Positions 25,906 through 48,700 of a stretch of DNA of 64,000 nt are shown here, piece by piece. Under the pieces are notes generated by a model. That model did no database searches. It was given only the letters and a program-made list of their open reading frames with translations, and was not told where the DNA came from. Numbering within the stretch: the first letter of the stretch is position 1; every line of letters begins with the position of its first letter. The position numbers and the translations under genes were made by a program. Source of the stretch: Auanema rhodensis. Its lineage: Eukaryota > Animalia > Nematoda. The stretch lies in the NCBI GenBank assembly GCA_964057225.1, contig OZ059897.1, positions 9,052,001-9,116,000 on the forward strand, read 5' to 3'.

Positions 25906-27092
25906 TTATGATGATGATGCCTCAGCCCAATCATCGCATTCTTCTTCCTCATCTTCCACTTCTACTGTATTGGTATTTTCTCGTCGAATTACCTTCTTAT
26001 GCTTCATTCGTCGGTTCTGGAACCACGTTTTTACCTGCAAATGGAGGATATCAGGCTAGAAATACACTGTTTTTTGATTTATTTGAAATTATGTTGCAAA
26101 AATTAAATATTTTGGAAGTTTAGATAGAATATGTTTCATGAGCCATAAAAGTGATAACATGTTTTGCATAATCTACACAAAATTTTCACGGTAATCATGT
26201 CAAATGGCCAGTTAATCTGGTAAAAACATGGCAATTTCCATTGTAAACGTTGTATTTTTAATGATTAAACATGCTAATACCTGTGTTTCACTTAAGTTCA
26301 ACACATTGGCTAATTCGATACGTTCTGGTGTACTGAGGTAGCGTTGAGTTTCAAATCGCCGTTCAAGCCCTTGTAGTTGTAAATCAGAAAACACGGTGCG
26401 AGCTTTTCTTCTGAAAACAATGTGAGTTTGATATTTCGATTTGAAAAATGCAGATATGATACACGTGTATATATGATTACAACTTCTAACCTGCGATATG
26501 ATTTACTTGTTGCTGCCAAACGTAAAGCATCAGATGTTGCTGCAGCTGCCCATAACTGAGGAAAAACTGAAAATAAATCTTAAAATCTCAAGAATGTCAG
26601 AGTTGCATCTTAGAAGATAAGATGATTGGTAATTACCATTTCTTTGAGCTAAGAGAAGACTTGAATCAATCGGTAATGGAGTACATCCAAACCAAAGTGG
26701 TAACTGTTCTGGTGCTGCTATCGCCAAATCAACAGGTAATAATGCTCCAGAACACCGACTGGCTAACTGAAAAAGTAAAAGTTTGATCGAAAATATTGGT
26801 TTGATTACAAAATAAAAAATTTCTAATTGTTTTTTAATTTAAAATTAATAAAAATATTTACATATATAGTAAAGAAAGAATAGTATATACTTAATAAACT
26901 CACTTCACTTTCTTTTCTTGATTGTTGTAACAATTCTGAATGAGTTTTCAGTAAGTCTTCAATCGAAAATCTCATCCCAGCAGCTGATACGCTGGATGCC
27001 GTCGAGTTTGTAGTTGCTGGTGTGGCTGGTTGTTGTGTTGCAACTGTAGGTAGTTGAGCTTGTGTTTGCTGAGCCAAATGCTCCATTATCAT
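25906..27092 (-). CDS. tab-1: Bsh/BSX-class homeobox transcription factor
   Basis: Exons 27092-26904, 26766-26637, 26566-26491, 26410-26281, 26034-25906. Homeodomain [58 protein letters not shown] (Bsh/BSX signature), eh1 motif FSIEDLL, acidic tail. Confidence 0.9.
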
Positions 27093-30000
27093 TTTGTTTT
27101 CTAAAATATTGTTAGTTAGCTATGGAATATACTTAAAAGTAATAAAAATAGTTTGAGATTATAACATGATTTGAAAAAAAAATTCATAAAGGATTTGCTA
27201 GAACACTGCTTATCTGGTTGAAAGACTTAGTCAGCGGAGTTGATACAGCCATCAGATGAATAGCACAACTGGTTTAGGACGGCTGCTCAGCGACGACGAC
27301 CTACCGTATACGGAGGTGGGGACACAGCTCTTGTTATTAACCGAAAAATGGGCGTGGTCATGTAGGATAGATCTCATTGGCTATGTTAACCGTCAATTTA
27401 ATTAGATATTAAAGGGAAAAGGAAAAAAGAAGACTAATTAATAATATTTCATATAATAATTATAGTTAAAAGCTATTTTTAAGAAATATTTTTCAGTTTT
27501 TAAACCGCACATCCTCACCACTCACGCAGAATTCATGTCACTTCTGTTATTGTATTGTATTCAGTCAGTTGTTTTTTACAATAATTTTCATATATGATAA
27601 TAAAAAATTTTGAATTAAACATCGGAAAAGGAAAAAGAGGCTGCTGGTTCTCAAATATGCTATACGTGGTATAGTCAAGTCATATTTTGAAGAAAAAAAC
27701 AAACTAATTGACATGGCATGAATAATAATAATAATAATTTACTTCTTTTTTTCTTTAATTAATAAAAAATAAATTATAATATTTTATAAATTATAGAAAT
27801 AAAATAATATTTTTTATATTAGCAGGAAGTTTTAATAAGAGATATGCTTATATAGAATTTATATTATTTTTAATTTGATTATAAAGAAAAATCTTTGCAA
27901 AGCTAAATATTTTCTCTTTTTTCAGAATTTTTCTGAAATATTTCAGTAAAGTTAGACAAGTTGCTGTAACAAATAGCTGGAAAGATATAATATTTTGTCA
28001 AAGGACAGAAGAAAAGTAACTGAAATTGAGAAGAAAAAAAAGTCTGAGCTCCTTAACGATAGCTAAAGTTGGAGAAAACGAGAGAGTGAATTGGTGAAAA
28101 GTAATTGTAGAAAACATATTAGTAGTTACACTAATGGGATTATAACAACAGACGGACTATCTGTCGATTCGGGTAAGTTCAGGATTGACCAAACAAAGCT
28201 GACAGGAGGAACATAACCAAGGAGGCAATAAGCCGAAAGGACTGTATAAGAGATATGTAAGTAATGTAAAAAGGATTAGTCGGCAAATGTATAATACAAA
28301 CAGTCAAAAAAAAGTTTTTTTATTCATTTAAGATCATTTATTTGCTTTTCTGAAAGAGGTGTTGAATCTATCTGTTTGTTACTAATGATGTATTAAGTGG
28401 ATGACGCAACTAAATATGGAAGAAGACAGATGGATGGATAATACATGTATTTCATATAAAACTTTACATTTTTTCTTTATTAACCATACTAATTATGCAA
28501 GAGCAGATGAGATATTCACTGCGCTTATTAGCAATCTAATCGTCTTGAAACCGTAATTTGCTATTGGGGGCAGTCAATGCCAGGTTCTCGTCATGGCTTT
28601 TTTAACAATATCTTCAGATTCAGGGAATTAAATCAAAAAGTATAGGAATCTGAAAAACTTTTTCGCATATTACCTCTGTTCCTCTCCCTCTCGAGCGTGC
28701 GCTCTCTCTCTCTCTTTCTCTCTCCGTCTATTAGTGTGGAAGGAGAAGAGCAATTCGACGTTTAAAATTGAAATGAAATTGAAGTGTCCAAAGACATAGA
28801 TTTTTTGATTTGATGTTTACTTGTCAATTATTATATTCATTAGTTATGAAGACTATATTATAGTCAATGCCACTTTATTATATAATATTCGAAGAATATC
28901 CTCAGGCTATCCATCTAATGCATAGAGTAATTGGCTTTTGTGTGAAAGCGGAAAATGAAGACAAGGGTGAAATCAAAGTAAATTGGAGAAGATTGATGAA
29001 AATAAGTGAGATTCTATTCGTGAATAGGTGAAGTAAATATGCTGTTCATATAATTTAATAAAGACATTTGTCGCTTTTCACTCTTAAACTTATGCGTTTA
29101 TAGCTTTTAGAGCTTTACTATCCATATTGAGCATTATGCTACTCTTACAAACTTTGTAACATATGGATAGCCAAAAGTGCCAAAAAAAAAAAGAAACAAG
29201 GGGATTGAATAAGAAGAATTATGAAGAGGCAGAGTAAAAGATAATAGACTGAAAAGTTTTGTATTTTTTCGGAGAAGAAACTTAGATCCTCAGATGTTGA
29301 TGAAGTGGTTGATGTCATAACTAATTAAGTAGTGTCATGTAATAGAAAGGTCAAACAGAAAACAAATAATAGTAATGAGGTATATTTCTTTTCAAAAAGA
29401 AAAAAAAGTTTTCTATTGAGTTGTGCCACATAAGGTGTCGACAACACACATACATACATATAGAGAGAAAGATAGGGAGAAGGTTGACCGACACAGCCTA
29501 TGCCACAAGTTGAATGCTATTGTCTGACTTCATTACTTTTATCAGAACATGCCGACACCAATCGACTTTGGTAGATCATTTGACACTTTTATTTAATCTA
29601 ACACCTCTTTTCACGCATGTCTTCTATCTTTTTGTCTTTCTACAACATCTAATCGTTTTTTGGGATTCAAATAAAGAGTCAGATATGGCTCTAACAAGAG
29701 GTAATTAACAGCCAATCAACATTTCATACCATAAACCGACAATACTTTCATTTTAGTGTGAAGTTTGCTGAGGATGGAACAGAAAAATGAAGTTAATGAC
29801 AGGGGGATAAGGAAAAAAATTTCTTGGAGTATACTATATCGTAAAGTAAATATTTGGTAGATCAAAAATCTGGAAAAAATGGCAACATAATTATGAAGAA
29901 TATGATTAGGCTGATGATCAAAGTTGTTGTCTTGATGGGTATAGGCAGTCGGCTTTCTTTTTGGCTTTCATGTCTTTCCTTTCGTAACTTCCTCTAAGAA

Positions 30001-30964: not shown

Positions 30965-31030
<66 letters not shown>
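30965..31030 (+). repeat. (AG)n microsatellite
   Basis: About 65 bp of nearly pure AG dinucleotide. Confidence 0.95.
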
Positions 31031-31035
<5 letters not shown>

Positions 31036-31688
31036 ATATGACGAACTCGACCGTTGAGGACATTGCAACATAAAGTGAATGTTACGTCATTCGACGTGTT
31101 AAGGTTCACGTAAGACTTCACGTTATGTTTAATATAATTAGAATATTTTCTTAATATATGCAGAAATGCCAAGCTTGATCTGTTCAAATATGTTTGTCAT
31201 CAGAAGAGTGTGCGGTGTGATCAAGAAGTTACTTTCTAATTGAATTACTGCTTAATCCGATGTTGTACGTGTACGGTATATTTCCATATGTAGGCAGTTA
31301 AAGAGGTCAACTAATCCTAATATCAAAGAATGTACTTCATGAAGACAGGTGTCTGTCCTACACTACTCTACACTTGTCGGGATGATTAACACAGGAAAAG
31401 TAGGCTACAACTCTTATTCATCAGGTCATTGAAGGCTGTTTCAAAGTAAAGTACCACCGATCATACTTGATGAGATGTCACATCCAAGTTTGTGAATAAA
31501 TGAGCATTTATGTGTTTTATAGAGGCAACTAATAAGGTTTGCATTGATACGACAACATTATAATGAAAATTTTATTTCATTGCTTAAGATAATGTCTTGG
31601 GTACTGCTTTTCATGCTTTAACATCTATCCTTTTTCGAGAATGATTCCTCTCCAGGATTGTAAATATTCTTTCTCGTGCAAGCTATCG

Positions 31689-31760
31689 GCCCAAGTAGTA
31701 TAGTGGTTAGTACTCCACGTTGTGGCCGTGGCGACACAGGTTCGATTCCTGTCTTGGGCA
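31689..31760 (+). tRNA. tRNA-His(GTG) copy 1
   Basis: Cloverleaf: acceptor GCCCAAG/CTTGGGC, D-arm GTAT..GTAC, anticodon arm CCACG-TTGTGGC-CGTGG, T-arm ACAGG-TTCGATT-CCTGT, discriminator A. A and B boxes intact, T4 run downstream. Confidence 0.97.
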
Positions 31761-31845
31761 TTTCTTTTGGAGTTTTATCAGCTACTCTTTTGTGAGAATG
31801 CTTCCTCTCCAGGATTGTGACTTTTCTTTCTCGTGCAAGCTATCG

Positions 31846-31917
31846 GCCCAAGTAGTATAGTGGTTAGTACTCCACGTTGTGGCCGTGGCGACACAGGTTC
31901 GATTCCTGTCTTGGGCA
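31846..31917 (+). tRNA. tRNA-His(GTG) copy 2
   Basis: Identical 72-nt sequence to copy 1. Confidence 0.97.
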
Positions 31918-32002
31918 TTTCTTTTGGAGTTTTATCAGCTACTCTTTTGTGAGAATGATTGCTCTCCAGGATTGTGACTTTTCTTTCTCGTACAAACTAT
32001 TG

Positions 32003-32074
32003 GCCCAAGTAGTATAGTGGTTAGTACTCCACGTTGTGGCCGTGGCGACACAGGTTCGATTCCTGTCTTGGGCA
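32003..32074 (+). tRNA. tRNA-His(GTG) copy 3
   Basis: Identical 72-nt sequence; 3' flank TCGTTTTT. Confidence 0.97.
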
Positions 32075-32577
32075 TCGTTTTTGATAATTTTTTCTATACT
32101 TTTATAAGTCGTGGTTAGCTAACATTTTCCTGTTTCTCCTATGTTTTTATATCATTTGAAATGCTCTTGGTTTCTCATCGAATTTGTTTCATTTTTTGTC
32201 TATTTCTGAATGTACTTTTGCCACGTCTTTTGATGTTGGGTCATCTTTATTTTGCTAAACAAATTTTATATACCTCATCTCAACCTAAACGGACTATAGA
32301 CGTTCTATATTGTCGTTGAAATTGTTATCATTTGTTAATAAAATCATTCTATCACTGATTTTCTGTTCTATTGATCTTCAGCAGAATATTATCAACTGTA
32401 CAGGACAACGAAATAGCCTTGCCGAACCGACATCGTAGACTGTTTTTTTTCTTGAATATTTTCTTTTCAGGATTGTAAATATTCTTTCTCTTTCTCTTTT
32501 GGAGTTTTATCAGCTACCCTTTTTCGAGAATGATTCCTCTCCAGGATTGTAAATATTCTTTCTCGTGCACGCTATCG

Positions 32578-32649
32578 GCCCAAGTAGTATAGTGGTTAGT
32601 ACTCCACGTTGTGGCCGTGGCGACACAGGTTCGATTCCTGTCTTGGGCA
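32578..32649 (+). tRNA. tRNA-His(GTG) copy 4
   Basis: Identical 72-nt sequence. Confidence 0.97.
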
Positions 32650-32734
32650 TTTCTTTTGGAGTTTTATCAGCTACCCTTTTTCGAGAATGATTCCTCTCCA
32701 GGATTGTAAATATTCTTTCTCGTGCACGCTATCG

Positions 32735-32806
32735 GCCCAAGTAGTATAGTGGTTAGTACTCCACGTTGTGGCCGTGGCGACACAGGTTCGATTCCTGTCT
32801 TGGGCA
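32735..32806 (+). tRNA. tRNA-His(GTG) copy 5
   Basis: Identical 72-nt sequence. Confidence 0.97.
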
Positions 32807-33362
32807 TTTCTTTTGATGAATTCATTATAGACTGCAAAAGTTGTAATTTTTTAAAATTTTTGCGTCATGGATTTTTCTTTTATTATATAAACTTTTCTTT
32901 CATCATTTTCTTGTAGTGCCTACATAATATTTTATTTCTAATTTCTGTGGCTCGCTATAGATAAGTTCGATTGGAAATATCGTTTCTAAAGACAATCAAG
33001 TACTTAATTAATTCTGGTTTACATGTTGGAATAGAAGTTCTTTATTACTCCTTGAAAAATTGTTTGAATATACGTATATCACGATCAACCATTTTCTTCA
33101 TACTTTTCTTTTCCCTAATGAAAACTATTTATTATTTTACAACATATTAATCATTCAATAAATATGTAGATAACGAAGAATACCCACAGGCAATCACATT
33201 CGGAAGCTTCCGATGGTATTTTGAAAACTGATATGTTTTGAAATAAGAACGTGCGATTCATCATATTGTTCGGACGTAGGATGGTATACAACATTATTCC
33301 TGAACAAAATAAAATTTTCTATACAACTGGATCATCAGGAAGACAGGGTTTCAACACTATCG

Positions 33363-33434
33363 GCCCAAGTAGTATAGTGGTTAGTACTCCACGTTGTGGC
33401 CGTGGCGACACAGGTTCGATTCCTGTCTTGGGCA
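33363..33434 (+). tRNA. tRNA-His(GTG) copy 6
   Basis: Identical 72-nt sequence; unique upstream flank. Confidence 0.97.
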
Positions 33435-33519
33435 TTTCTTTTGGAGTTTTATCAGCTACTCTTTTGTGAGAATGCTTCCTCTCCAGGATTGTGACTTTTC
33501 TTTCTCGTGCAAGCTATCG

Positions 33520-33591
33520 GCCCAAGTAGTATAGTGGTTAGTACTCCACGTTGTGGCCGTGGCGACACAGGTTCGATTCCTGTCTTGGGCA
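33520..33591 (+). tRNA. tRNA-His(GTG) copy 7
   Basis: Identical 72-nt sequence. Confidence 0.97.
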
Positions 33592-33676
33592 TTTCTTTTG
33601 GAGTTTTATCAGCTACTCTTTTGTGAGAATGATTGCTCTCCAGGATTGTGAGTTTTCTTTCTCGTATAAGCTATTG

Positions 33677-33748
33677 GCCCAAGTAGTATAGTGGTTAGTA
33701 CTCCACGTTGTGGCCGTGGCGACACAGGTTCGATTCCTGTCTTGGGCA
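33677..33748 (+). tRNA. tRNA-His(GTG) copy 8
   Basis: Identical 72-nt sequence; 3' flank TCGTTTTT. Confidence 0.97.
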
Positions 33749-33833
33749 TCGTTTTTGGAGTTTTATCAGCTACTCTTTTGTGAGAATGCTTCCTCTCCAG
33801 GATTGTGAGTTTTCTTTCTCGTGCAAGCTATCG

Positions 33834-33905
33834 GCCCAAGTAGTATAGTGGTTAGTACTCCACGTTGTGGCCGTGGCGACACAGGTTCGATTCCTGTCTT
33901 GGGCA
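33834..33905 (+). tRNA. tRNA-His(GTG) copy 9
   Basis: Identical 72-nt sequence; 3' flank TTGCTTTT. Confidence 0.97.
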
Positions 33906-33990
33906 TTGCTTTTGGAGTTTTATCAGCTACTCTTTTGTGAGAATGCTTCCTCTCCAGGATTGTGAGTTTTCTTTCTCGTGCAAGCTATCG

Positions 33991-34062
33991 GCCCAAGTAG
34001 TATAGTGGTTAGTACTCCACGTTGTGGCCGTGGCGACACAGGTTCGATTCCTGTCTTGGGCA
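33991..34062 (+). tRNA. tRNA-His(GTG) copy 10
   Basis: Identical 72-nt sequence; 3' flank TTGCTTTT. Confidence 0.97.
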
Positions 34063-34147
34063 TTGCTTTTGGAGTTTTATCAGCTACTCTTTTGTGAGAA
34101 TGCTTCCTCTCCAGGATTGTGAGTTTTCTTTCTCGTGCAAGCTATCG

Positions 34148-34219
34148 GCCCAAGTAGTATAGTGGTTAGTACTCCACGTTGTGGCCGTGGCGACACAGGT
34201 TCGATTCCTGTCTTGGGCA
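34148..34219 (+). tRNA. tRNA-His(GTG) copy 11
   Basis: Identical 72-nt sequence; 3' flank TTGCTTTT. Confidence 0.97.
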
Positions 34220-36314
34220 TTGCTTTTGAAAATTCTTTTCATAATTTAATGCTTTTTTTAATTGTTTTCTTTCGTATTTAAATGGCATTCAGGTGCAGTT
34301 TTTACTCCCATTAAACTTGACAAATATCGAAAAAAACTTGTAGAATATTTGACCAATTAATGAAGTTCATCAACTTTATGACATGTTTAGAAATCAGAGA
34401 GACTCACAATCACTGGTTGCTGATAATATCTTATTTGATAGACTTGTTCATCAATATTCCATTTTATGATCTAATTATTATAATTTTCATCAGGTACGTT
34501 TACCTTTTGAAAATGTTTTATATATTGTGTTTCAATGTTTTTTCAATTAAAATCAAACAGAAATATTATATTTAAAATTCTTTATGGATAGTAACCCAAC
34601 TTAGAGTTGGATCTTTAAAGCTTACATCTTATGCAAATCTCTGAAAATAACATTAAATGGGCAATTAGAGTTCTTGGGTAATTATCACAAGTCATCAATA
34701 GGTTATTAGTATGGGTAATCGTTTACATAACAATTAATATACGGTATTCAAACTTTGGCAAGTTCGGTTAAAAAAAAAATTAAAGCCATATATGGAGTGA
34801 GAGGCAGATTGAGTATTCAGCATAGGCTAAGTATGAGCCAAGCTTACGGAGAGAGACGGGAGAGGATTTTGGGAGGTGGGGACACAGCTGGACAGGCTTC
34901 TGTGTGATCAGAAAATGAAAGACAGAAAACAATGCTCAGGAGTTCGAAAACGATTATAGCAATGTATGTATGTGCCAGTTGAAGTTTCAAAACGAAATGA
35001 CATTGCAGATTGAAAATCAATTGATACTAGACATAGCCAATATTTCAGAAACTTTCTTTGAGTTATTTTGGGGGAAAATGAGTTGAAAAGTTTTCTGAAT
35101 TTCATTTGTAATATTCAAAAGTAATCATTTACAGCAGAGCAGGTCATTGTGATGATATTGAATGAAAGAAATATTAAACTATATGTATACATATATAGTT
35201 AAAAAATAATATATAAGAGTAAAAGCACCTATAAGACTGAAATGAAGATGTTAGGCAACTAGCAAGGCTTCAGTAAATACATCTTATAGAATACCAAATA
35301 TAAAACTATTTTCTGAAGAATAGAACTTAAAAGGCGTTGGGACGTAAGAAAGGGATTGGCAGGGAGTAGACGGCAGAAAGGTCGGGGGAAGGGGATAAAT
35401 CAGAAGAAATAATATTCAGAGATGAGAAGAGAAAAGAAAACTCTTATAGATATACAGCTAAATAAAGCTTTGTTTTTTTTGATGATTTCAAGTTTCAAAT
35501 TGATAAAAAAAATATTTTTTGTATGAAACAAAGACATCTATGTTTTGTGTGCAGGTTTTTGTATACAAATCGGTAGTTGGACCTGTATTACCGAGGACTA
35601 GTGAGAGTGCTGATGACAAGATTTTGGAAAAAAAATTATTAAAAATAGAAATGAAAAATTTGTAAAAAAAACGTTGTGTGACGAATAGATTACGACGACA
35701 GTAACTTTTGTTTTGTAAAAATTTCTGCCACTAATCCAGCATCTTGTTCAATTCGTTTCTATCTATCTATGAAGATATATAGAGGGAGAAACAGAGATAG
35801 AGGGAGAGTGTGTGTGAGAAAGAAGGAGCGAGAGAGGGAGAGAGGTAGGTGGAAGTAGATATTATTCAGCTGAACATGCTTTTATTAAAAAAATAGAAAT
35901 CTAGAGATTATATTTAGTTCAGTTGAGCTGTTTCTATGCTTCCAAACAATGCATTCTAGAATATCCGTATCTGATTGATTCCGAAAAATTGACTTCTGGC
36001 CATATAATACCTCTTATGCCAATATGCTGCTTGAGCATATGCTCTTGGGAGAACAGAGACGAAACAGAATACTGATATCTGATGGACAACTAGAAGGGTT
36101 ATTTGACAACAATATATCAAATTTCAAAACAAAAAAAAAGTTTAAAAATAGATAGAAGGCACACACGTATGCGGATAGGACGGTAGCTGCACATTGGCTA
36201 AAGTCGTTAAAGGCAGTAAGGTAGCGAACCATACGGCTTGAATGAGCCGCATTGTTCAGCTTGTCTTGAAGAGTGAAAAAGGAAGACATCGACGCCCTGA
36301 ATTTATCTCAGCTC

Positions 36315-37911
36315 TCAAGATGCTGTTGATGTGGCGGTAGCAAGTATTTCTTCTTTTTTCGTTGGCTCGGTATGATTTTCTTCCAGTGGATCACGTGCTG
36401 TGAGTGGTTCTTCAGGAATTCGGGACTGATACCATTCCCTATTCTCTTCCAATTGATCCAAAATATTTTGAGCATCTGGATATACAAGATCTGCCCATGT
36501 CTCATACAAAGGATGAACGATGTAGTCGATGAATCCAACCTGCAAACACAAGGCCATGTTATTAATGAGAAAACATGTTTTCATAGAATTACCTGTGACT
36601 TTTCGATCGTAACATTTCCTCGATCACACATAGGTGATACTTCTAATCCATGTTCTTTTTCCTTATCACCTTGCCTCCAATATTCTTCCAAAATTCTCAT
36701 ATTCCATTGACGGTAAAGTTCAATTGGCTTTGTTGGGTTAGAAAGATCAGCCAAATGAATCATGGATTGAAGAACCTTGAAGGAAATATGTATGAGAACA
36801 CTATGAACATCAACTGATTATACTTGAATCTTATCGTTATATTTGTCAAGTACAATGACATTATTTCCTGCAACCTTCTTGGCTTCAACCATTGTCTTCA
36901 AATCAGCTAGAAGTGACATATGTTTGGACATATCAGTTGCCAAAACCTGCAAATATTCGAATAAATACAAGACAAATTTAAATTGAATTGGAAATAATAG
37001 GCTAGAAAGAAAAGTTTTTTTTAAGCTTAACTAAGGACATGATCAAAGCATGACATCATGAAATTTTCAATTGTTTTCGCTGTTGTGGAAAAGCTTGCAT
37101 ATGTTTCAAGGATATATCTTTCTAATTTATTATAATATCTCGATTATTCATACAGTTGCTGCTGCAGCTCGATAGGACGATCACCATTCATTATCAATCT
37201 GTGTGTGCTGATACGAATGATTACAGAACGGGTCGTCGTTCGACATCTAATGCTGTGACTGATGGCTTCCGGCGGAAACCGGGCCCTGTGTCGCTATCGA
37301 TGTCGCCAATCCGCAGTGTCGGCTAATACCGACGCCGTCAACGACTTTTACGATAACGACGTAATGAGAAGTCTTTCAATGATCTTATTCTTCCTCAACA
37401 TACACAAATCATCATCAATGTTGATCAAGACAGCTATTTGTGAAGGAGATCAAGCTGAGGCTGATTCATATAGTTAATACAAAGATCAACCAGAAGCTTG
37501 AATGGAACTGAGCGGTCACCTCAAACACGGATTGCGCAACAATCACGTTTTCAGAATGTTGCAAGTGTTGAACCGGAAACAAGTTCAACCTTTGACCATC
37601 TAGAGTAAAAATTGAAATAGTTGACACCATGAACTATTGGAATAAAATATATAGATAAACAAAGCTTATCTATATATTATAGTAAACTTTTCAATCACTT
37701 TGCTCAAAATAATCGTTGAAAATGGGAAAATGACTGTGGGACCACCCAAAGATATGTCATCTTAGCTGTTAATCTGCTAAATATGCTGTCAAAAAAAGAA
37801 TGATAAACGATCTATCTTAATCAACCATTTTCCTTTCTTTCTTTATAGGTAAAAACTAAACGAATTGAAATAAGGGACACGCATTACGAAGTATTTTAAC
37901 ATGGGTGAAAG

Positions 37912-37948
<37 letters not shown>

Positions 37949-40773
37949 GGCGGAAGGAAGACAGAAATGCAATGAAGTGGAAAAAACACAAATGCAACCG
38001 TTCTCTGTGCACGTAGTTTTTAAAATAAAAATTATGTGAGCGCGAAGTTGATGTAGTGATTTGGCTCAACGAATACTGTGCTTCTCAAGATGTTTTCTAA
38101 TTAATTGCTAAAACTATGCAGTTTCCGATAATTCTTAAAAGAAGAAATGAAAAAGAAGAAGAAGGAAGTAAGAAAAGTAAATTATATGCATAATTCTAAA
38201 GAATTCGATTTTAATAGATGATTACGAGAGAAAGTAATACAAGGTAACGAGGTTTACTACAATAACTTTTCCTTTTTCAGTTTAATGATGCAATGAAATT
38301 TGATAGTTTAGGGGGCTCTATTCCCTTATAATAAAATGAAATTTAAAAAATAATAGAAATATAAAGTAAAATTGGTTTGAATGAAAGTAAAAAGCCGGTT
38401 ATTAGTTGCTTATTGTATTTATGATTTTTTAAAAATATCATGTTGACTTTCGATTTTCTAAAAAAAACTGTTTGAACAGGTCTTTCAAAAAGACAACGAG
38501 GTAGATGATACTGTTAAGAAAGTAGATAGATAGTATAAAGTTTTAAGAGGTAGAAAGAAAAAATGAAATATAGAGATAGAGAGATAGAGAGAGATTCAAA
38601 TTAAAATTGACATCTAGTTTGCTTTCTTTGATTAACAGATACACACACACACACACATACACATAAGGAAAAATGATGGAAAAGGTAGAAAGATAGACAA
38701 CGTGAAATGAAAAAAATTTAGAAAAGAAAGTTCAAAATAATGAGAAGAGAGACAACTTTCTGTTTTTTAGAAATCTAGCGCACAAGTCCGCAGGAAATCG
38801 ACCTTAGTGTAGATTGTTCCAACGAAAAAAATATATTTAAAACACTTAAAAAAAAGAAGATAACACTAGGAATATTATAGGAAATTGGATGAAAAGAAAG
38901 AAAAAAACAGAATACTAAATGAACATACCATATCAATGACTATTTTTCTGAATTGAAGGCGTTGTTTTCGGCTTAAGCTCGTGAGGAAATCACAATTAGA
39001 ATCTTGAAGAAGCTTGAAAGCTACAGCTAGATGATGTTGTTCCAAAACACTCTCGTCATTGTACATGATAGCTAGTTCATTATCTGTAATACAAATGATG
39101 TATGAAATGAAAATAAAAGTTTAAAATGTACTTGAGTTAATAAGATATTGATTGGTAAATCCAGGATGATCAACATCGTGAATAGCTCCAGCGAAAATTG
39201 CTGCCATTACTTCAAGATCTGAGAAAACCTCCTAAACATACAGAAAGATTAGTATGATTGCAAAGCTTAAAGCATTGTTACCGTTAACACTGGAGATGTT
39301 AAGAGAACATGCATAGACTGTGTGACATCAGCAGCATGTATGTGGTTGTGATAGGGATTACTACGGTAATGGTGTTCCAAATTCAGAAGATAAGTTACAA
39401 GAGTTGATGATGGAATTTCAAATGTCTTGATTAATCCTCTTTCTTTGAATAATGTATATGTTACAGCTGTTAAGGCATGATTCTTAGATAATTCGTCTAT
39501 TTTGAATACGTCAGGTCCCCAATCGTTAATCTGAAAAGCAATAACACATAGGTTTGATCATATTATCGCGAAAGCGCGATGCTGTTTCTTACACGTTGCA
39601 TATAGACAGCAATTTCCTTTGCACACGTAACACCATATTCGGGTAAGTTACCCTCATGTGAGTGAGCACGAAGCTTTCTAACTCCAGAAATACGGTTCAT
39701 AGCTGCTGTTTGAGCCTTCTTCAGAAGGCCCATAGGTAGTTGAGGTGATGATGTTGACGGTCCCTGCAAATGCATTATATTCTTTCGTAGATATTACTAT
39801 TCATTTATGATTCTTGAAGAGATGTATGTATTTGCTGTCAGAGTTTCGTGAATAATGACTGCTTGTCCAGCAATTGCGACACGTACTCGTGACCTTAGAA
39901 GGGTGAATGCCTTGAAAGCTTTTCCACGTGAGATGCCACGCGAAAACTTAGTGCTAAGCCTGACGTCAAAGGCATGCGTAGAAGAGCTTTAAATGCCAAA
40001 AAGAAGAATATCGGATGTCCTTCTTCTTTCACTGCCCACTATTTGACTTAAATGAGTGTATTCTCTCAAAACTTCATATTACTTATATCATCTCAAAGAG
40101 ATTTTTTGTCATATTTCCCACCCACCCTCGCCAGTGTCAATCTAATCTCTCTCTTTTTCTCTCTCTCGCTCTCTTTTTCCATTTGAATGGCGAAAATTGT
40201 TTTTTGTCTTTCGTATGTTATAAGGTAAACCTTTAAACTGAGCCATAAATTGGATTTTTTTTCTCAAATGGAATCTTTGGTTTTCTCTCTATTTTCCTTC
40301 AAAAGACTGGAAATTATTTTTCTTCTCGCTTGACTGTGCTGTTTTATATGTTTTTTGTCTCCACCGATATTCAGCATGAGCATAGTCGTTGATCATCGAT
40401 GCTTGCTGACCATGATCCAACTAAACGCCATCAAACTGAGAAGAGAAACAACCCAATACGCTGCTCGTAACATAAACACTCACGAGAACGAGTAATGATG
40501 ATGCAATAAAGAGAGGAATCAGACAATCAAAGAGTTCTTAAAGAGAGAATTTTAAAGTAGATAGAGAGGAAAGAGAAAGAGAATGAAGAACATTGAGATA
40601 GTGAGAACAAAGAAACATTAAGGTTATAGTTTTTATGAAACAACCGAGTAACGGAAATGAACAAGGGCATTATCATCATTCTAACAAGCTTGCTTCATTG
40701 CTTGCTTGCATCTTATATAAACAAAAACCTTTTTTTTTCTTTCTCAGAATGAAATGCTTTATAAGGTTTTCAT

Positions 40774-40822
<49 letters not shown>

Positions 40823-43800
40823 TAGAGGGTGGAGTAATATTTTCTTTTTTCTCTCATCTTCCTCTGTTTTTTTTCTCTTGTTTTTAGCTTCTCTTACATT
40901 TTTTCAAAATGTTTGTTTGCACATACCGTTTGACACTCCCTAATTGAAAAGTTTTTTTTTCTTTTCTGGATCACGTGTGATTTTTTTATTCATATAACAT
41001 GCTAGAATTACACTCTTTTTTACGATGTTTTGATTCTTAAAAAGAGAGCAGAAAAAAGGTTTTGATGAGGTTGAACTGATGTCATCCAGTTCACACGAAT
41101 GATGATACTCTTCTTCTCTTCTTTCTCATCAAATGTAAAGTTCACAAAAAATGCTTATTTTATGACTTTTTAGCGATAGGCAAGACAAAGAAGAATCAGG
41201 AGATAGTGAAATACGAGGCTAAGATGATTCAAAGATGAGAAAAAGTTTTTTTTTCCAAAAAAAAAAACATCAGAGAGTCACAAACTTACATTAACTTCTC
41301 CAGGTACTTCTATTTCAATAGCTCCGTCATCCTCATCCTTATCCATATAAGTTGTAATAAGAAATTTGGAAACCTGAAACGTAGATACATAAATAGATCA
41401 GAATAACGATGTGAATGGCAGATGACGTGGTTGTAGACACGACATCCTCGTCAACAATGACAAGCAAAGAGATAATGGCTAGGTAACATACCTGAGTACC
41501 CGATTTCGAAGATTCAGCGAAATGACTGAGTTCTTTATTGAGCATTTTTCGGAACTGAAAATTATTATAATGATTATAGCTATATGATATAGTTAGTGTT
41601 TTATATATAATATGTTGTTTGTTTTGAACCTTTATATCTGCACAAATCACCTTCTTTTGCTTAGCTATATAACGCATTATGATTCTGTTATATAGTTCTA
41701 ACGGCTTCTGACGGCAGCGATGAGCTTGTCGTCGGTAATGTGGTCTAATAACGTCTTCAATTTTTTTTTTACTCAAATTACTACGATTCAGTAAAATAAC
41801 AGAGATTGTCAGAACAAAGGCCTGATAAAGATAAGAACGATCAGTGAAAATCTACGCAAACGCTAACGCAATAACGTAATTATTGGAGCGCAGAAACATA
41901 TGATAAAATGGAAATAGTCCGGAAAATGGAACGCCAACCTCATGAGACGGATGAAAAATTGTGGTTGAAAGGGCTGTCATCTGGAGATGTGTGAGGACGA
42001 TGACGATGAGATGGTGGCAGGTTGAGCAGTTTAATGAAGACGATCACTAGACAAGTGGTGAAGATGGAATTCAACAAGAATTCAAAGAACAGATAATGGT
42101 ACAAGAAAAGGATTTGTAGAAAAGTGGGAGGAGTAAAGACTGAAGAGAGACTAAAGAAGTCTGAATGACATCCAGATTGCTCATGAAGAAAGAGAGAAAA
42201 AGGAAAATGAAGAGTGATAGAGAGAGGAAGAGAGAGGGAGAGAAAGAGAGAGAGAGAGAAAGAGTACGCGAAGTTTCGAAGATAATTTGACGGAAAAAGG
42301 ATGGAAAAAAACGAAAAATGGTATTAGAAGGATGTGACCGAAGATGTTGTAGTCGCTATAGGAGAACAAGGAATTAAGTATCGGAACGTTGACACAGCTT
42401 TTGAAGTTTCAATAAGCCGATCATGGATTATACAACGTCTTCAGCAACGGTTTGGCGAGTTTTACAGAGGATTTTCCGGAACACATTATTGGAAATTAGA
42501 AAGAAAATGGTTAGTTTGTCGTTTGAAGACTATTAGAAGGCCGAAGGATTTGTGATGAATGTTTCAAATTACATGATGAAAGTAGGATATATCAAGTATT
42601 CAGATGCAAAAGAATTAAATAAATGGAAAAAGAAGAAAAGAGAATATAAGCATTGAGAGAAAGAGAGAAAGAGCTACATGAATGAATGCATATAGAATAA
42701 GAATAAATAAAAAAAAAATAAAAAGTTTCAAATGTATTAAAAACAAATAAAAAGAATGAAATAAGAAAGAATAGCAGTAGCAAGAAATGAATAATAGATT
42801 CTTATTTGGAAGTGTTTTGATTGGACGATCAGCTTGTTCTCTCTCTTTCTCTCTCTTGGATATAAAATGTTAAATCTTGCAAAATCTCTGTTGACTGTAC
42901 GATGACGAGAGAAATGATCTGGGCGGCCGGAAGTCAGTGATGTGAAAATGATGGGATGGGAAAGAGGGAGGAGCGGACGTTGATGTCGTCGTCGATGTCG
43001 ATGACGGTGTTGACGGTGCGCTGACGACAACGGCAAGAATGGAAAGAAGAGTTGATGCCATAGGAGAGTAGGGGCGGGCCGTATGTAGTGATGATGGCAT
43101 GTGTCTGTGTTACTTAATACATAAGATCGACATCATCCCAAATAAGGCAGAAGCATGGGGATAGGTGGATATACAGGGAGTTGGAGAGATCGGATGGAGA
43201 GAGGGAGCTGCAGATAGAGATAGAGATAGAGAGAGAGAGCGCGCATGAAAAGGGGAGAGAGAAAGAGAGAGTAGAGAGAAAAGATGCAAATGCAATGTGT
43301 GTTCCAGAAAACTTTCAAATTATGAAACCGTGACGATATATGCGGATATTCAAAGACTTAGATATAACAATAGTTGGAGGAAATGATGCATTTGATAGAC
43401 GTAGAAAGATAGAAAACGAGGTAGGAGATAGAAAGATTCTGGTTATGGAAATCAGCTGAACATATAGCTTGAATAAGATTGGCTATTGGGTAGTTATCAG
43501 CTGTCGAAAGATTGTCGGAGCAGATAATGGACAAGGAATAAGATGATAACGAATGATAACTAAGGACCTTTTTGTAAATGGACTTCATAAAAGGTGATGT
43601 AACGAGAACGGAAAGCTATGATCGCCGACAGAAAAATAGCTTCCGGTCGTTCAACCGCAGTCATCGTTGTTGTTGTTGTTGATGATGATATAGTAGATGT
43701 CTGATTAGATTAAAACAATTGTCGTCATGGTTCTCGTCCGTCGAATGTATCGCCTGATGCTATAGGTCGTAAGAAGATGTCTCCTGATAATGCAGATGAC

Positions 43801-45628
43801 TCTGCTATAACCACAACGAAAGACGAGACGGACGATGATGCAAGCTGAGATGACAAGAAGAAACATGTCATCATGTCCACGCAGATGAGTGTGGGCTGAG
43901 CCAAGCATCATGAACACATCATACCAGAATGGCACGATCACCGAGATGAGATGATGAGGATGAGAAAAAAAATTACAAAAATTGTATAAAAACGTGATTG
44001 GCAGCAGAAGGGCGAAGCTTTAGGAGGGAAGAAGCGGCCACATGGATCTTAGATTATCGTACGTCATCCAGCTGGGTGACCTCAGCCATCATCTGATCAT
44101 CGGCTGTTCATCAAATCTTTTGTTGTTTTATGAACGTGAAAGAAAAAAGCACCAGGGAATTGAAAAGATGATTGACTGGATGTGCATAATGGAAGCCCAG
44201 TGCATGTGTCGTTCAACTAAAAATAAAGCTTTATCCGCTGTTTTGAGCATATTTCCATCAGTTATACCAGTAGTCATCAATGAACGTTCAACTCCTTGGT
44301 CTTTCTGATGAGCGTTCTGATCGAGTAAACATGTGGTCAGCTTGTTTAACGGAACGTTCATAATTCGATAATTCAAAGCCGGATAAGTTCTATGTTTTTA
44401 GCAACATTGAAGATTTGGTGAGAAACATGATTTAGAGAGCAAAAACAGCAAAACACTTTCTGTGAACTAAGACAAAGCTGTGTATTGTAGAAACCGTGTC
44501 TCTCTTGCGGTTTCTGATTCCGACGTCAAAAGTCGGCCATGGTGGTGTCGAGGGTTTTCCATCGAAAAACGAAGAGGAAGGAAAGAAAAATAAAAGAAAA
44601 GGGACACTCTCGACGTCTCTTTGTCTGCTATGACATTTTAACGTTGAATCGTTCTTCGATTCGTTCACGAAATCCTTTATAATGAGAAGAAATAGAGATG
44701 AAAGAGCAGGTAAACTTCAGAGAATACGAGAAGAACTAATGAATACGAGAGATGGAGATAAACACTTGGAAAGGTAGGCTTTCGATAGGGAATTGAAATG
44801 TTTGATAACGACGACAACCACACAGATGTTCATCCATCTGAAGCACATCTTAGGTGAACATCTTAGTCCAAGCGACCGAATATGGTATCTAGATGTCTTG
44901 CTGTTATCGTCTTCGGTTGATCAGCAAAATGATTGCAAGAATGGTCAGAGAACGTGTACACCAATGGTTCTTGTGCAAAGTCGTTCAATCAACTGATAGG
45001 CTACATGGCATGGATGTGAGAGATGATGACGCTGATGGTGATGTCGCTGCTGGCAGCTAGTATTGACGTTAACACCTTAGGTTGCTAGTTGTAAGGTGCA
45101 AACCCGTGCGTTACCGGTTTGTCTGTTGGCAAAATTTCCGCTCGGAAGAGATAGGTTGTTTCGAGCAGATTCTGAAGATTAGACAGAACGTTGCCGTTCG
45201 TATGGTTGTGCAAGTTGTCGTCTTCATGTGATGTTATTACTGACAGAAAGGCAAAATTGGAAAAGCAATAGAGACTTTATAAAAACAGATCAGGACATTG
45301 GTTGATGACGGCTGTGGGGCATACAGGGGTTACTACCACGACAACGATCAGTAGCAGCTACATGACGGAAGGGGCTGGACAAGGTTGGAACGAGATAATG
45401 AGATCAGTTAAATGATCCATCAAAACCAACTTTGTCTGTATTAGCGCTTTAACGCTTCTAGTATTCCGACGAAGATGCTGCTGTCAAACGACGACGGAAC
45501 GAGGACGGACGGCATTTGTGTTGTTCATTTGACAACCGGAAGCCAATATAATATGGTTATCAGTTACCAGCCATGACGAGATCGTATGAAGTGATGACGG
45601 TACACATCAATGCTAAAGGGGTTAGCAG

Positions 45629-45702
<74 letters not shown>

Positions 45703-48700
45703 GATGATGTCGAAAATGCTACTGAACGAAATGATTTAAAGAAACAGTTCACACGGAAACTGTGAGTATCTGAACAGAATGATACTAGACTGAAGAGCTA
45801 TATGTTGCACTAAATCGAAGCCAAGCCCTCCTCCTATCGTGCTATATCTCTGAATATCGTAGATGATGGCTGGCTGAACGTCATGGATGAGAATCTATTG
45901 AAGGTTTTGAAAGAGACTGACTGTTTCATGAATGAATATCATGAAAAGGTCATATGAACGCTATGAGTACTTCTACAAGTAAAATCCCCTATGAAGAATG
46001 CATTATTACAGATCAATCTAGAATAACTGAATGATAATGATGGTAAATCGAGAATTTTCAAAAAAAAAAAAGTTTTTTTGACCATTTCAATCAAAAAGTA
46101 CAAATGATTTTGAAAGAATCTCGTACACATAAATCATTGTTTTCAATCTGCAGTTTTCATTTTTTGGAAAATAATTTTCGAAAAAGAAAGAAAAGAAAAC
46201 TTTTGAAGAAAAATGATACATGTATAAGATTTAAGGAAGTAATTCTTCTTTTCTTCATAATTATATATCGTTAGCCTCATCAAATTGACTAACAGTATAG
46301 GTTACAGACGAAAAAATCTCCTTTTCTTTGCTTATTGTCATCCATCCAAAAAAAAAAGTTACAAAAGAAAATCAGAAAATTTCCGGAAAGAAAATAAAAC
46401 AAAGAAAACTGAACGATAAAAGAGGAAATGATGTTCTTGATCATACTATCAGAGAACATATTGCCTAAAGATGTTCGATGTGCAGTTTTGAAAAGAATGA
46501 TTGATGAATATTTAATGGTATGAAATATGATGAAAAGAGCTTTTAAAAAATGAAAAAGGATCCTTCACTTTTCAAATAAACTATTGAAAGTTCTCTTTTT
46601 TTTTAATTTTTTTTTATTTTTTAGAAGAAAAATGAATAATAACAAGAAGTTGACACAAAAAAACAATCAACGAAATATTTAAAGATTAGGCTGAAAGCTC
46701 AAAAAAAGTTCTTTTTGTCAGATTAATGCTGTTATTTAATATGAAACTTGTTTGTAGTTTGGTGATTTGTGCAGATATTTGAGATCAAATATTTGAAAAT
46801 AATCAAAAACTACGAAGAAGAAGCCGTAAGAACGTACTTTGCTGGAAGCCATTTCTGACACAGAACGATGAGTTTGTATTGTTTCCAGCTGGTCCAGACA
46901 CCAATCTAATTCTTCTGAAAAGGAATAGAATCAAATTAGCTGCAAATAATATAAATATTTTATTATTATTTATCATATATTTTAATTAATTTTTATCTGA
47001 TAATTCTAATGATAATTAATGATATATTATAATATTTTTAGAAAAATTAAATTCTTAATAAGAATATGAAGATCGTATTTCAAATCAAAAAATTATAAAT
47101 ATCTTTCTCTTATTCTTGTGTATCTAAGATGTTTTTTGATTTTTCTTTCGTTGGTTTTTTGGTGTTTTTTTCTGTTGCACACAATGTAATGTGATGTTGC
47201 ATGTGGATTTGAAAATAAATGATATCATATAGTTAGTATATAATATTAAATATAACATATAAGTAACTGAATAAGTAAAGAATATTTACCTTCAGTTATT
47301 ATCACAAAAAGAAAAGAAAATATCAGTTTTGTGTATTAAATTACAAGAAAAAAAAGAAGATTATTATAAATAAAGTTATATAAATGAATAAGAATAATAA
47401 ATTATTCTATAAATAGATAACTACTATACATCACTTTATGTATATGTATATCTATTTATTTTATATTTAAGCTTTAAGAATTAATATCTAAATTTAGATC
47501 TAAAAAGGGATCACAAAATCATTTTAAAATCTTAAATTTAACATTTTTAAAAAAAAAATATAATAATGCTTATAGCATATATCATATATATTATAATTTA
47601 AGAATATTATATAGTATTTAGTAAAGAAACAGCTACATACACATACATACGTATCTATCTATCTATGTATTCTTAGTTGGTTATAAAGACATTTTTTCTA
47701 AGTTATTCAATGTCAAAATTGGATGAAGATATGGTTTTTGAACGAAAATTTCAATTTCCTTTTTTCTTCAATTTCTTTACTAATTTTTTGTCAGTTAAAT
47801 AGTCAATGGACATGAATTACTTATGATTTTACTATTAAATTGCACAATGTCTATCAATTAATAATTCTGACATGATGTTTTTTTTTAAATTATTCTATTT
47901 TCTATAGAATATTTCCTTTTCTTTTTTTTTTTAAATTATAAATCAAATTAATATAATCGATGACATAAAAGCAATACAGCCGTTATAATTTGTCTTTAAC
48001 ATCTATCGAATCACGTATCTCTTATTATAATTTAATTAATTTATATAATATAAAATTTAATATTTTTGAATGTATTTATATAAAATATTCCGAAGATCAT
48101 ACACATACTATGATTATATGTTTTTAAAACATTTGTAATTGAAAACTAGCTCATTGGTTTGTTCAAGTTTCACATGAGAATCTGAGTCAGACAACCGAAA
48201 CAGGAAACGGAGATTCGTGAGAAGTTTTTTTTTCCAAAAACGATATAGTACACGTAGTAATAAAGCGGAAATGAAATATCAAAAGAAAAGTTCACGTGAA
48301 AGGGCAAACTTACCTTTCACGTTAGCTTGCAACATCAAAGGTCACGTAATGATACATGTACTTTCACGTGTATTTGCAAAGAAAATATAATAACTAATGA
48401 TTTTAGGCGGGTAATGAAGTAAATTCAAACGGGTTTTTACAAACAAACTAGAAAAAATTGGTTAAAACTCACCTAAAGTTTCTTGAGCACAAGTGACAAC
48501 ATTGTCTGGTAATGAAGTATTATGTAGCGGCGGCCTCTTTGACGTGCGCGAAGCATGTCGACCCTCATCAGCATTCTGAATTAATTGATATAATATGATT
48601 ATTGAAAATCTAACCTATAAAGAGTTCAAGAAAACAAAGAGCAAAAGGTTGCTATTGCTTATTTGATTCCCTCATTTACTTTTACATCATTTCTTTCTTA

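Follow-up and report, generated by a model that had tools for sequence, protein, structure and literature searches.

The window, a 64,000-nt stretch of contig C5 of the Auanema genome, contains 11 tRNA-His(GTG) genes, all on the + strand between positions 31689 and 34219 (ARAGORN; the count is exact). We read them as a functional, locally amplified Pol III tRNA-His(GUG) cluster that supplies tRNA-His, and put the probability of this overall explanation at roughly 0.8. All 11 copies form a cloverleaf with a GTG anticodon (ARAGORN, RF00005), each matches Rfam RF00005 with 67.3 bits (gathering score 29), and the 72-nt bodies are identical in 11 of 11 copies. The predicted fold of the 73-nt RNA that includes G-1 is likewise cloverleaf-like. 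Consistent with an earlier note on this DNA, which gave each copy its own A and B boxes and a T4-5 terminator, the A box (positions 8–19) agrees with the consensus at 10 of 11 sites in each copy, the B box (GGTTCGATTCC) is perfect throughout, and an oligo-T terminator, T4 or T5, lies ≤9 nt from every 3′ end. With both boxes internal, each copy would be transcribed by Pol III as a unit of its own. The sense strand of each spacer carries three further T4 runs (four including the terminator), which argues against the multimeric read-through precursors that had also been proposed. The units also show 72-aa open reading frames on their minus strand, which are spurious products of a repeat without stop codons, and a bacterial promoter and terminator scan was set aside as inapplicable to Pol III genes. 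A metagenome query with 40 nt of the tRNA-His gave no match.

The whole locus spans 2.6 kb (contig C5, 9.0836–9.0862 Mb) in gene-rich DNA of an autosome and is not a satellite-like array with one uninterrupted period. Start-to-start distances between successive genes are 157, 157, 575, 157, 628, 157, 157, 157, 157 and 157, such that the 157-bp period is true of 8 of the 10 intervals, and only within blocks; TRF reports three separate arrays of 3, 2 and 6 copies (Table 1). The number and identity of the genes described in the earlier note therefore stand, whereas its single uniform array on a fixed period is broken by jumps of 575 and 628 nt, the blocks being set apart by non-unit DNA of about 503 and 556 bp. 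The MITE-like element in the first interruption has about 26 further copies, at 71–78% identity, on contigs C4, C5, C6 and C8, several of which sit within a much larger tRNA-His block described below. In the degenerate remnant that follows the element, positions 32446–32490 match positions 31631–31675 at 84% over 45 nt. The single-copy stretch in the second interruption stops exactly 6 nt 5′ of the sixth tRNA copy.

Table 1. Features of the tRNA-His locus and its neighbours (positions in the window)
Feature	Position	Strand	Evidence or remark
Bsx/tab-1-like homeobox gene	25909..27119	-	WFQNRR exon; PF00046, E 5e-13 and 1.7e-6
Block 1: spacer type A leader and three tRNA-His genes (31689-31760, 31846-31917, 32003-32074)	31593..32083	+	ARAGORN, Rfam
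MITE-like dispersed repeat, ~315 bp, 11-nt terminal inverted repeats, 7-9 nt past tRNA copy 3	32081..32395	.	Inverted-repeat search
Degenerate remnant between MITE-like element and block 2	32396..32494	+	Partial similarity to the 157-bp unit at 32446-32490
Block 2: two 100% identical units, spacer type A, tRNA-His 32578-32649 and 32735-32806	32495..32815	+	ARAGORN, TRF
Single-copy stretch of 541 bp between blocks 2 and 3	32816..33356	.	Sole genome match is to itself
Block 3: six tRNA-His genes (33363-33434, 33520-33591, 33677-33748, 33834-33905, 33991-34062, 34148-34219); spacers B, C, B′, B′, B′	33357..34228	+	ARAGORN, TRF, Rfam
PDE4-type cAMP phosphodiesterase gene	36318..49527	-	PDEase_I exons and two PDE4_UCR exons

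All eight internal spacers are exactly 85 nt long and together have 16 variable sites, bearing out the observation that the spacers vary yet hold their length. Genome matches of the 85-nt spacer are confined to this locus. Spacer types follow the order A-B-C / A-A / x-B-C-B′-B′-B′ across the three blocks, the three-unit segment at 31683–32083 matches that at 33357–33757 with 99.25% identity over 401 bp, and whole units are identical among copies 9–11 (three) and between copies 4 and 5 (two). Given that segmental duplication accounts for the order of spacer types, concerted evolution, which the earlier note had invoked, is not needed. The recent duplications of copies 9–11, copies 4–5 and the 401-bp segment fit a locus labile in copy number, in line with the dosage-tunable array of the earlier note. 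The cluster grew as its 157-bp unit, which is private to the locus, multiplied through unequal crossing-over and segmental duplication, and a small transposon-like insertion broke it up in a later step.

We searched the assembly of 180,911,798 bp for further copies of the gene. A tRNA-His block of 0.91 Mb (C5:10.17–11.08 Mb) lies on the same contig, 1.1 Mb from the cluster, and a 28-nt core of the tRNA-His occurs 1043 times in the genome. A 38.5-kb sample of this mega-array contains 112 His genes with a period of 332 bp, only 31 of which are canonical; the other 72% are mutated, at positions G10, G53, C56, A14 and U8, with G10A, G53A, C56U and A14C among the variants. Outside the mega-array we found 16 canonical His genes, namely the 11 in the cluster and five singletons (canonical in their 5′ half), as counted with exact-match patterns, which would leave out other isodecoders and any copy that has AA at -7/-6. 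A preprint of August 2026 describes the A. rhodense germline assembly as 180.9 Mb with 19,554 tRNA genes, and lists tRNA arrays among its germline-restricted tandem repeats. With that number of annotated genes, the reported arrays and the 0.91-Mb His array, similar arrays are routine in this genome, a finding that, as the earlier note recognised, lowers the novelty of the cluster. Taken alone, it is an ordinary tRNA gene cluster, and its value lies in the contrast with the giant array nearby: an intact cluster beside a decaying 0.91-Mb array offers a clean within-genome view of selected and unselected copies of the same gene. Small intact clusters would also show which copies serve translation in a genome where most of about 19,500 tRNA genes are in huge, probably discarded arrays.

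The tRNA bodies of the cluster have no variable site among 72 positions, against 16 among the 85 positions of the spacers ((85/157)^16 = 5.4e-5), and the spacers of types A, B and C diverge at as many as 10 of the 60 sites compared while the bodies are all identical. As far as sequence comparison goes, this points to purifying selection on the tRNA-His body while the spacers drift, in agreement with the earlier note, although body identity may partly reflect recent duplication, the independent lineages being fewer than 11 and several units being identical in their spacers. A genome that amplifies tDNA readily might instead have produced the cluster as a neutral by-product, that is, a small, young "seed" array with no dosage role and with bodies identical through youth. 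Thousands of arrayed tRNA genes elsewhere in the genome are consistent with such an origin, as are copies 9–11 and 4–5, whose spacer identity indicates very recent duplication. However, neutrality sits poorly with spacer types that have diverged around invariant bodies, and with the mega-array, which is evidently under relaxed selection and has 72% of its bodies mutated. Moreover, the MITE-like insert is only 71–78% identical to its relatives, which indicates that the locus is not very young. We consider a neutral origin unlikely.

The cluster occupies a 9.2-kb gap between two genes that we searched exon by exon. On one side is a homeobox gene, which from its homeodomain sequence we take to be Bsx/tab-1; it starts about 4.5 kb from the cluster, and its 5′ side faces the cluster. 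On the other side, the 3′ end of a PDE4 gene lies about 2 kb past the cluster (PF00233 matches at C5:9088575-9091240); this UCR-bearing gene is the only PDE4 gene detected in the genome, among six PDE loci. These domain matches (PF00046, PF00233, PDE4_UCR) confirm the location between tab-1 and pde-4 given in the earlier note. A position between a homeobox 5′ side and a PDE4 3′ end would suit a chromatin insulator or barrier, in which TFIIIC-bound tDNAs part the homeobox and PDE4 domains and 157 bp is the spacing of nucleosomes or Pol III complexes. However, the period is not constant across the locus, and in the nearby mega-array this tRNA repeats every 332 bp, so that a phase of 157 bp is not favoured; the reading of 157 bp as a nucleosome or Pol III footprint is therefore unsupported. 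In known cases of barrier activity, a single tDNA suffices, and 11 copies thus need another explanation. Barrier activity of tDNAs and TFIIIC sites is known from yeasts and human (for tDNA/TFIIIC insulators, Raab et al. 2012, cited in PMC6950938), and TFIIIC sites mark heterochromatin borders in C. elegans, but the candidates there are extra-TFIIIC sites without Pol III rather than active tRNA genes (PMC6950938). A human tRNA variable-number tandem repeat at 1q23.3, which like the cluster bears tRNA genes, varies in copy number and has been put forward as a boundary element; its unit, however, is 7.3 kb long and binds CTCF (PMC4041453), which nematodes lack (PMC6950938). Taken together, an insulator role appears even less probable than a neutral origin. 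Assemblies are prone to collapse or expand tandem repeats, but an error of copy number or block structure through mis-assembly is very improbable here, given a 2.6-kb locus far shorter than PacBio HiFi reads, 236-fold coverage of gene-rich regions (A. rhodense preprint), and blocks that bear distinct diagnostic variants and unique interruptions.

Under our preferred reading, that of a functional cluster supplying tRNA-His, its genomic setting bears on where that supply is used. Nearly all genes are in low-repeat, retained regions according to the A. rhodense preprint. Tandem repeats make up 4.5% of the window, which also carries the only PDE4 gene detected, and conserved genes lie within 2–4.5 kb of the cluster, which does not fit the germline-restricted (eliminated) class of tRNA repeats. 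The cluster resembles the reported germline-restricted arrays in gene type and in its head-to-tail units. Unlike them, it is tiny (11 copies, 2.6 kb), all its copies are intact, its 157-bp unit is private, and it lies in low-repeat DNA between conserved genes, which makes its retention in the soma probable. We suggest that the cluster would escape programmed DNA elimination and persist in somatic cells. As 11 of the 16 canonical His genes found outside the mega-array belong to it, the cluster is probably the main source of tRNA-His in body cells, as judged from sequence. The giant His array is probably confined to the germline and largely defunct. If this is true, about a thousand or more His copies would be germline-only, most of them decaying; body cells would be left with about 16 intact His genes, two-thirds of them in the 2.6-kb cluster; and germline and soma would differ in His-tDNA dosage by a factor of about 60 or more.

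The elimination boundary was not located within 9.12–10.17 Mb of C5, and seven motif guesses failed; the break-motif patterns were guessed from verbal descriptions, the published motif being given as a figure only. TTAGGC-N15-GCCTAA has one match, TAGGC-N15-GCCTA has 23 against 16 in a control, and TTAGGCNGCCTAA has none. A recurrent 25-mer proved to be a 29–35-bp minisatellite, and inverted double telomere seeds matched telomere junctions only. The published chromosome 5 break position, 16,502,174, was tried on C5, but the palindrome at that site recurs just 4 times across the genome, and the assumption that contig C5 is the preprint's chromosome 5 was rejected.

A G at -1 and an A73 discriminator are present in 11 of 11 copies, such that G-1 is genome-encoded, and a conserved leader, CTATC or CTATT, lies upstream of G-1. 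The G at -1 recurs in every His gene copy listed. A six-frame search of the genome gave no PF04446 match for Thg1. In C. elegans, the G-1 of tRNA-His is likewise genome-encoded (Rao and Jackman 2015, PMC4338351), with G-1 opposite A73 and, as here, no Thg1 detected; an encoded G-1 without Thg1, so far shown only for that species, would thus extend to Auanema. This suggests that nematodes beyond Caenorhabditis may encode the G-1 of tRNA-His in the genome. The conserved CTATC leader might guide an unusual 5′ cleavage. The number of presumably functional His genes is also similar, at 17 in C. elegans, of two isodecoder types (PMC4338351), and 16 found here. Unlike in C. elegans, however, 11 of these 16 are in one locus, and about a thousand or more extra copies form a satellite-like block. 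That both parts hold together, with elimination splitting the tRNA-His family and leaving the cluster as an essential somatic locus, and with encoded G-1 without Thg1 reaching Auanema, is a tentative proposal to which we give slightly less than an even chance.

The coexistence of tandem and dispersed copies of one isoacceptor has a parallel in the Ser-Tyr-Tyr and Pro clusters on chromosome 1 of Arabidopsis thaliana (PMC7544208, PMC12308677), and both systems raise the same question, namely whether or not the clustered copies are expressed. The Arabidopsis clusters are heterochromatic and largely silenced, whereas the His cluster lies in gene-rich DNA and is seemingly the functional set; here, the giant array would be the set that is silent or discarded.

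ARAGORN identified 11 tRNA-His(GTG) genes as the only tRNA genes of the 64-kb window, all on the plus strand between positions 31689 and 34219. Their 72-nt bodies are identical in 11 of 11 copies, and each copy scores 67.3 bits against the Rfam tRNA model, for which the gathering score is 29. The earlier note had described one array with a fixed 157-bp period. This description holds within blocks, where all eight spacers are exactly 85 nt, but not across the locus: start-to-start distances are 157, 157, 575, 157, 628, 157, 157, 157, 157 and 157 bp, and Tandem Repeats Finder splits the 157-bp repeat into three arrays. Given the 575- and 628-bp intervals and the three arrays, we conclude that the genes form three blocks, of three, two and six copies, rather than one fixed-period array. 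An (AG)35 microsatellite lies at 30965-31035, ~0.6 kb upstream of the cluster, and long CT/AG-rich low-complexity tracts are numerous elsewhere in the intergenic and intronic DNA of the window.

The spacers vary at 16 of 85 sites, whereas the tRNA bodies vary at none of 72, a contrast with a probability of (85/157)^16 = 5.4e-5 if mutations were spread evenly. This supports the proposal that the tRNA body is under purifying selection. The order of spacer types along the locus (see table) is A-B-C / A-A / unique-B-C-B'-B'-B', and positions 31683-32083 match 33357-33757 at 99.25% identity over 401 bp, indicating that a three-unit segment was duplicated whole. Segmental duplication and unequal exchange, as read from the sequence, account for the spacer pattern; homogenisation is not needed, and the concerted evolution that had been suggested becomes superfluous. 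The 85-nt spacer has no match in the genome outside the cluster locus, and hence the 157-bp unit arose there. The first gap holds a MITE-like element, inserted just after a tRNA terminator, and then a degenerate remnant of the 157-bp unit; the second is 541 bp of single-copy DNA. About 26 relatives of the element, at 71-78% identity, lie on four contigs (C4, C5, C6 and C8), several of them within the tRNA-His mega-array described below (e.g. C5:10,804,958 and 10,873,585), and the element may favour tRNA genes as targets. A neutral young amplification would also yield identical copies, but we consider it improbable, since the spacers have diverged while the tRNA bodies are invariant, and the transposon-like insert is old.

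Coordinates of features in the window and of singleton tRNA-His loci elsewhere in the assembly, with the spacer types of the cluster
Feature	Position	Strand	Remarks
Homeobox gene	25909-27119	minus	
MITE-like element	32081-32395		~315 bp; 11-nt terminal inverted repeats; first gap; inverted-repeat search
PDE4-type gene	~49527 down to 36318	minus	PDEase_I and PDE4_UCR exons
Spacer type A			leaders of copies 1, 4, 5
Spacer type B			copies 2 and 7; copies 9-11 differ by one site (B')
Spacer type C			copies 3 and 8
Singleton	C4:6,731,112 (locus with G at -1); C4:6,731,118 (canonical 5' half)		
Singleton	C5:5,861,938 (locus with G at -1); C5:5,861,944 (canonical 5' half)		
Singleton	C5:8,488,154 (locus with G at -1); C5:8,488,160 (canonical 5' half)		
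Singleton	C5:15,629,287 (locus with G at -1); C5:15,629,293 (canonical 5' half)		
Singleton	C6:7,439,501 (locus with G at -1); C6:7,439,507 (canonical 5' half)		

Within the unit, the A box matches 10 of 11 consensus positions and the B box shows no mismatch. Each copy has a T4 or T5 run ≤9 nt from its 3' end. Multimeric read-through precursors, which the earlier note had envisaged, are unlikely, because each spacer carries three further sense-strand T4 runs. The discriminator base is A73, and a G at -1 is encoded in all 11 copies and in the five singleton loci examined; RNA folding with G-1 included gives a cloverleaf-like structure. A six-frame search of the genome, which short exons can escape, found no Thg1 domain. 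C. elegans is alike in these respects, lacking Thg1 and keeping an encoded G-1 opposite A73 (Rao and Jackman), and from its sequence Auanema appears to have the same mechanism. The leader before G-1 is CTATC, or CTATT in copies 3 and 8, and CTATCG/CTATTG is common to the cluster and four of the five singletons, these four being on two contigs. The leader may therefore be under constraint, although shared ancestry could also account for it.

The window spans C5:9,052,001-9,116,000 of a genome that comprises 180,911,798 bp in 112 contigs; the A. rhodense germline assembly described in a preprint is 180.9 Mb with 19,554 tRNA genes, and its germline-restricted tandem repeats include arrays of 5S rRNA, several tRNA loci and U2 (10.64898/2026.08.27.747507). 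A 28-nt core of the tRNA-His gene occurs 1043 times genome-wide, nearly always in a single block, the mega-array (C5:10,172,412-11,082,401), which begins 1.06 Mb past the window end and has one inverted segment. In a 38.5-kb sample of it (loci L001-L030; C5:10,192,173-10,230,714) there are 112 His genes with a period of 331-333 bp, separated by an AT-rich spacer with no relationship to the 157-bp unit. Just 31 of these genes are canonical; changes in the other 81 fall at invariant or promoter positions (G10, G53 in the B box, C56, and U8 with A14), and one variant combines G53A with C61T, a double change that would re-form the T-stem pair. Counted with patterns that leave out the mega-array's upstream base, canonical His 5' halves beyond it are the 11 cluster sites and five singletons, so that the cluster holds 11 of 16 canonical His genes there, compared with 17 His genes in C. 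elegans (Rao and Jackman). The preprint's general statement on tRNA arrays, together with the sequence decay, makes elimination of the mega-array from somatic cells probable.

The cluster occupies part of a 9.2-kb gap between the 5' side of the homeobox gene and the 3' end of the PDE4-type gene, both read exon by exon. We take the homeodomain to be Bsx-like, the family of C. elegans tab-1. The names tab-1 and pde-4, given in the earlier note, are reasonable orthologue labels. This PDE4 is the only UCR-bearing locus among six PDE loci detected genome-wide, and would therefore be needed by the soma. Tandem repeats make up 4.5% of the window, which on this basis falls in the low-repeat, high-coverage class of DNA that carries the genes (10.64898/2026.08.27.747507). 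Because tandem repeat is low, conserved neuronal and developmental genes lie within 2-4.5 kb, and the sole UCR-bearing PDE4 is adjacent, we infer that the cluster is kept in somatic cells.

We favour, at a probability of about 0.8 on sequence grounds, an ordinary multi-copy Pol III cluster, whose copies, kept invariant by purifying selection, would supply tRNA-His and are probably its main somatic source. The insulator function that had been proposed is improbable: the broken period, and the same gene arrayed at 332 bp, speak against a structural meaning of 157 bp, and candidate insulators in C. elegans are TFIIIC sites without Pol III. An assembly artefact is very improbable for a locus of only 2.6 kb in a HiFi assembly. 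Like this Pol III cluster, Arabidopsis chromosome 1 (PMC7544208), the human 1q23.3 repeat (PMC4041453) and the A. rhodensis arrays carry tandem tRNA genes; such clusters are already well known, and the His cluster is a small further example. Its modest interest is as the intact counterpart to a decaying giant His array.

Candidate motif patterns searched across the genome did not locate a break site of programmed elimination. TTAGGC-N15-GCCTAA has one exact match, a telomere-seeded 27-mer at C5:14,063,480-14,063,506, which may be a break site or a decoy. A dispersed minisatellite of period 29-41 bp, with telomere-like seeds in its unit (TAGGC ... GCCTAAGCCTA), occurs at C5:8,677,170-8,677,264, C6:15,352,732-15,352,855, C3:15,668,594-15,668,676 and C1:15,272,784-15,272,837, and at single sites on C1, C4, C6 and C7; its architecture, TAGGC-N3-GG-N5-CC-N3-GCCTA, is reminiscent of the break-site motif as described in words. 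The GC-rich 25-mer GAGGCGTCGGGCTGGCCAAAGCCAA and close variants are present in dozens of copies, many on C1 and C3 (e.g. C3:9,403,767 and C1:18,488,571), and probably belong to a dispersed transposable element.
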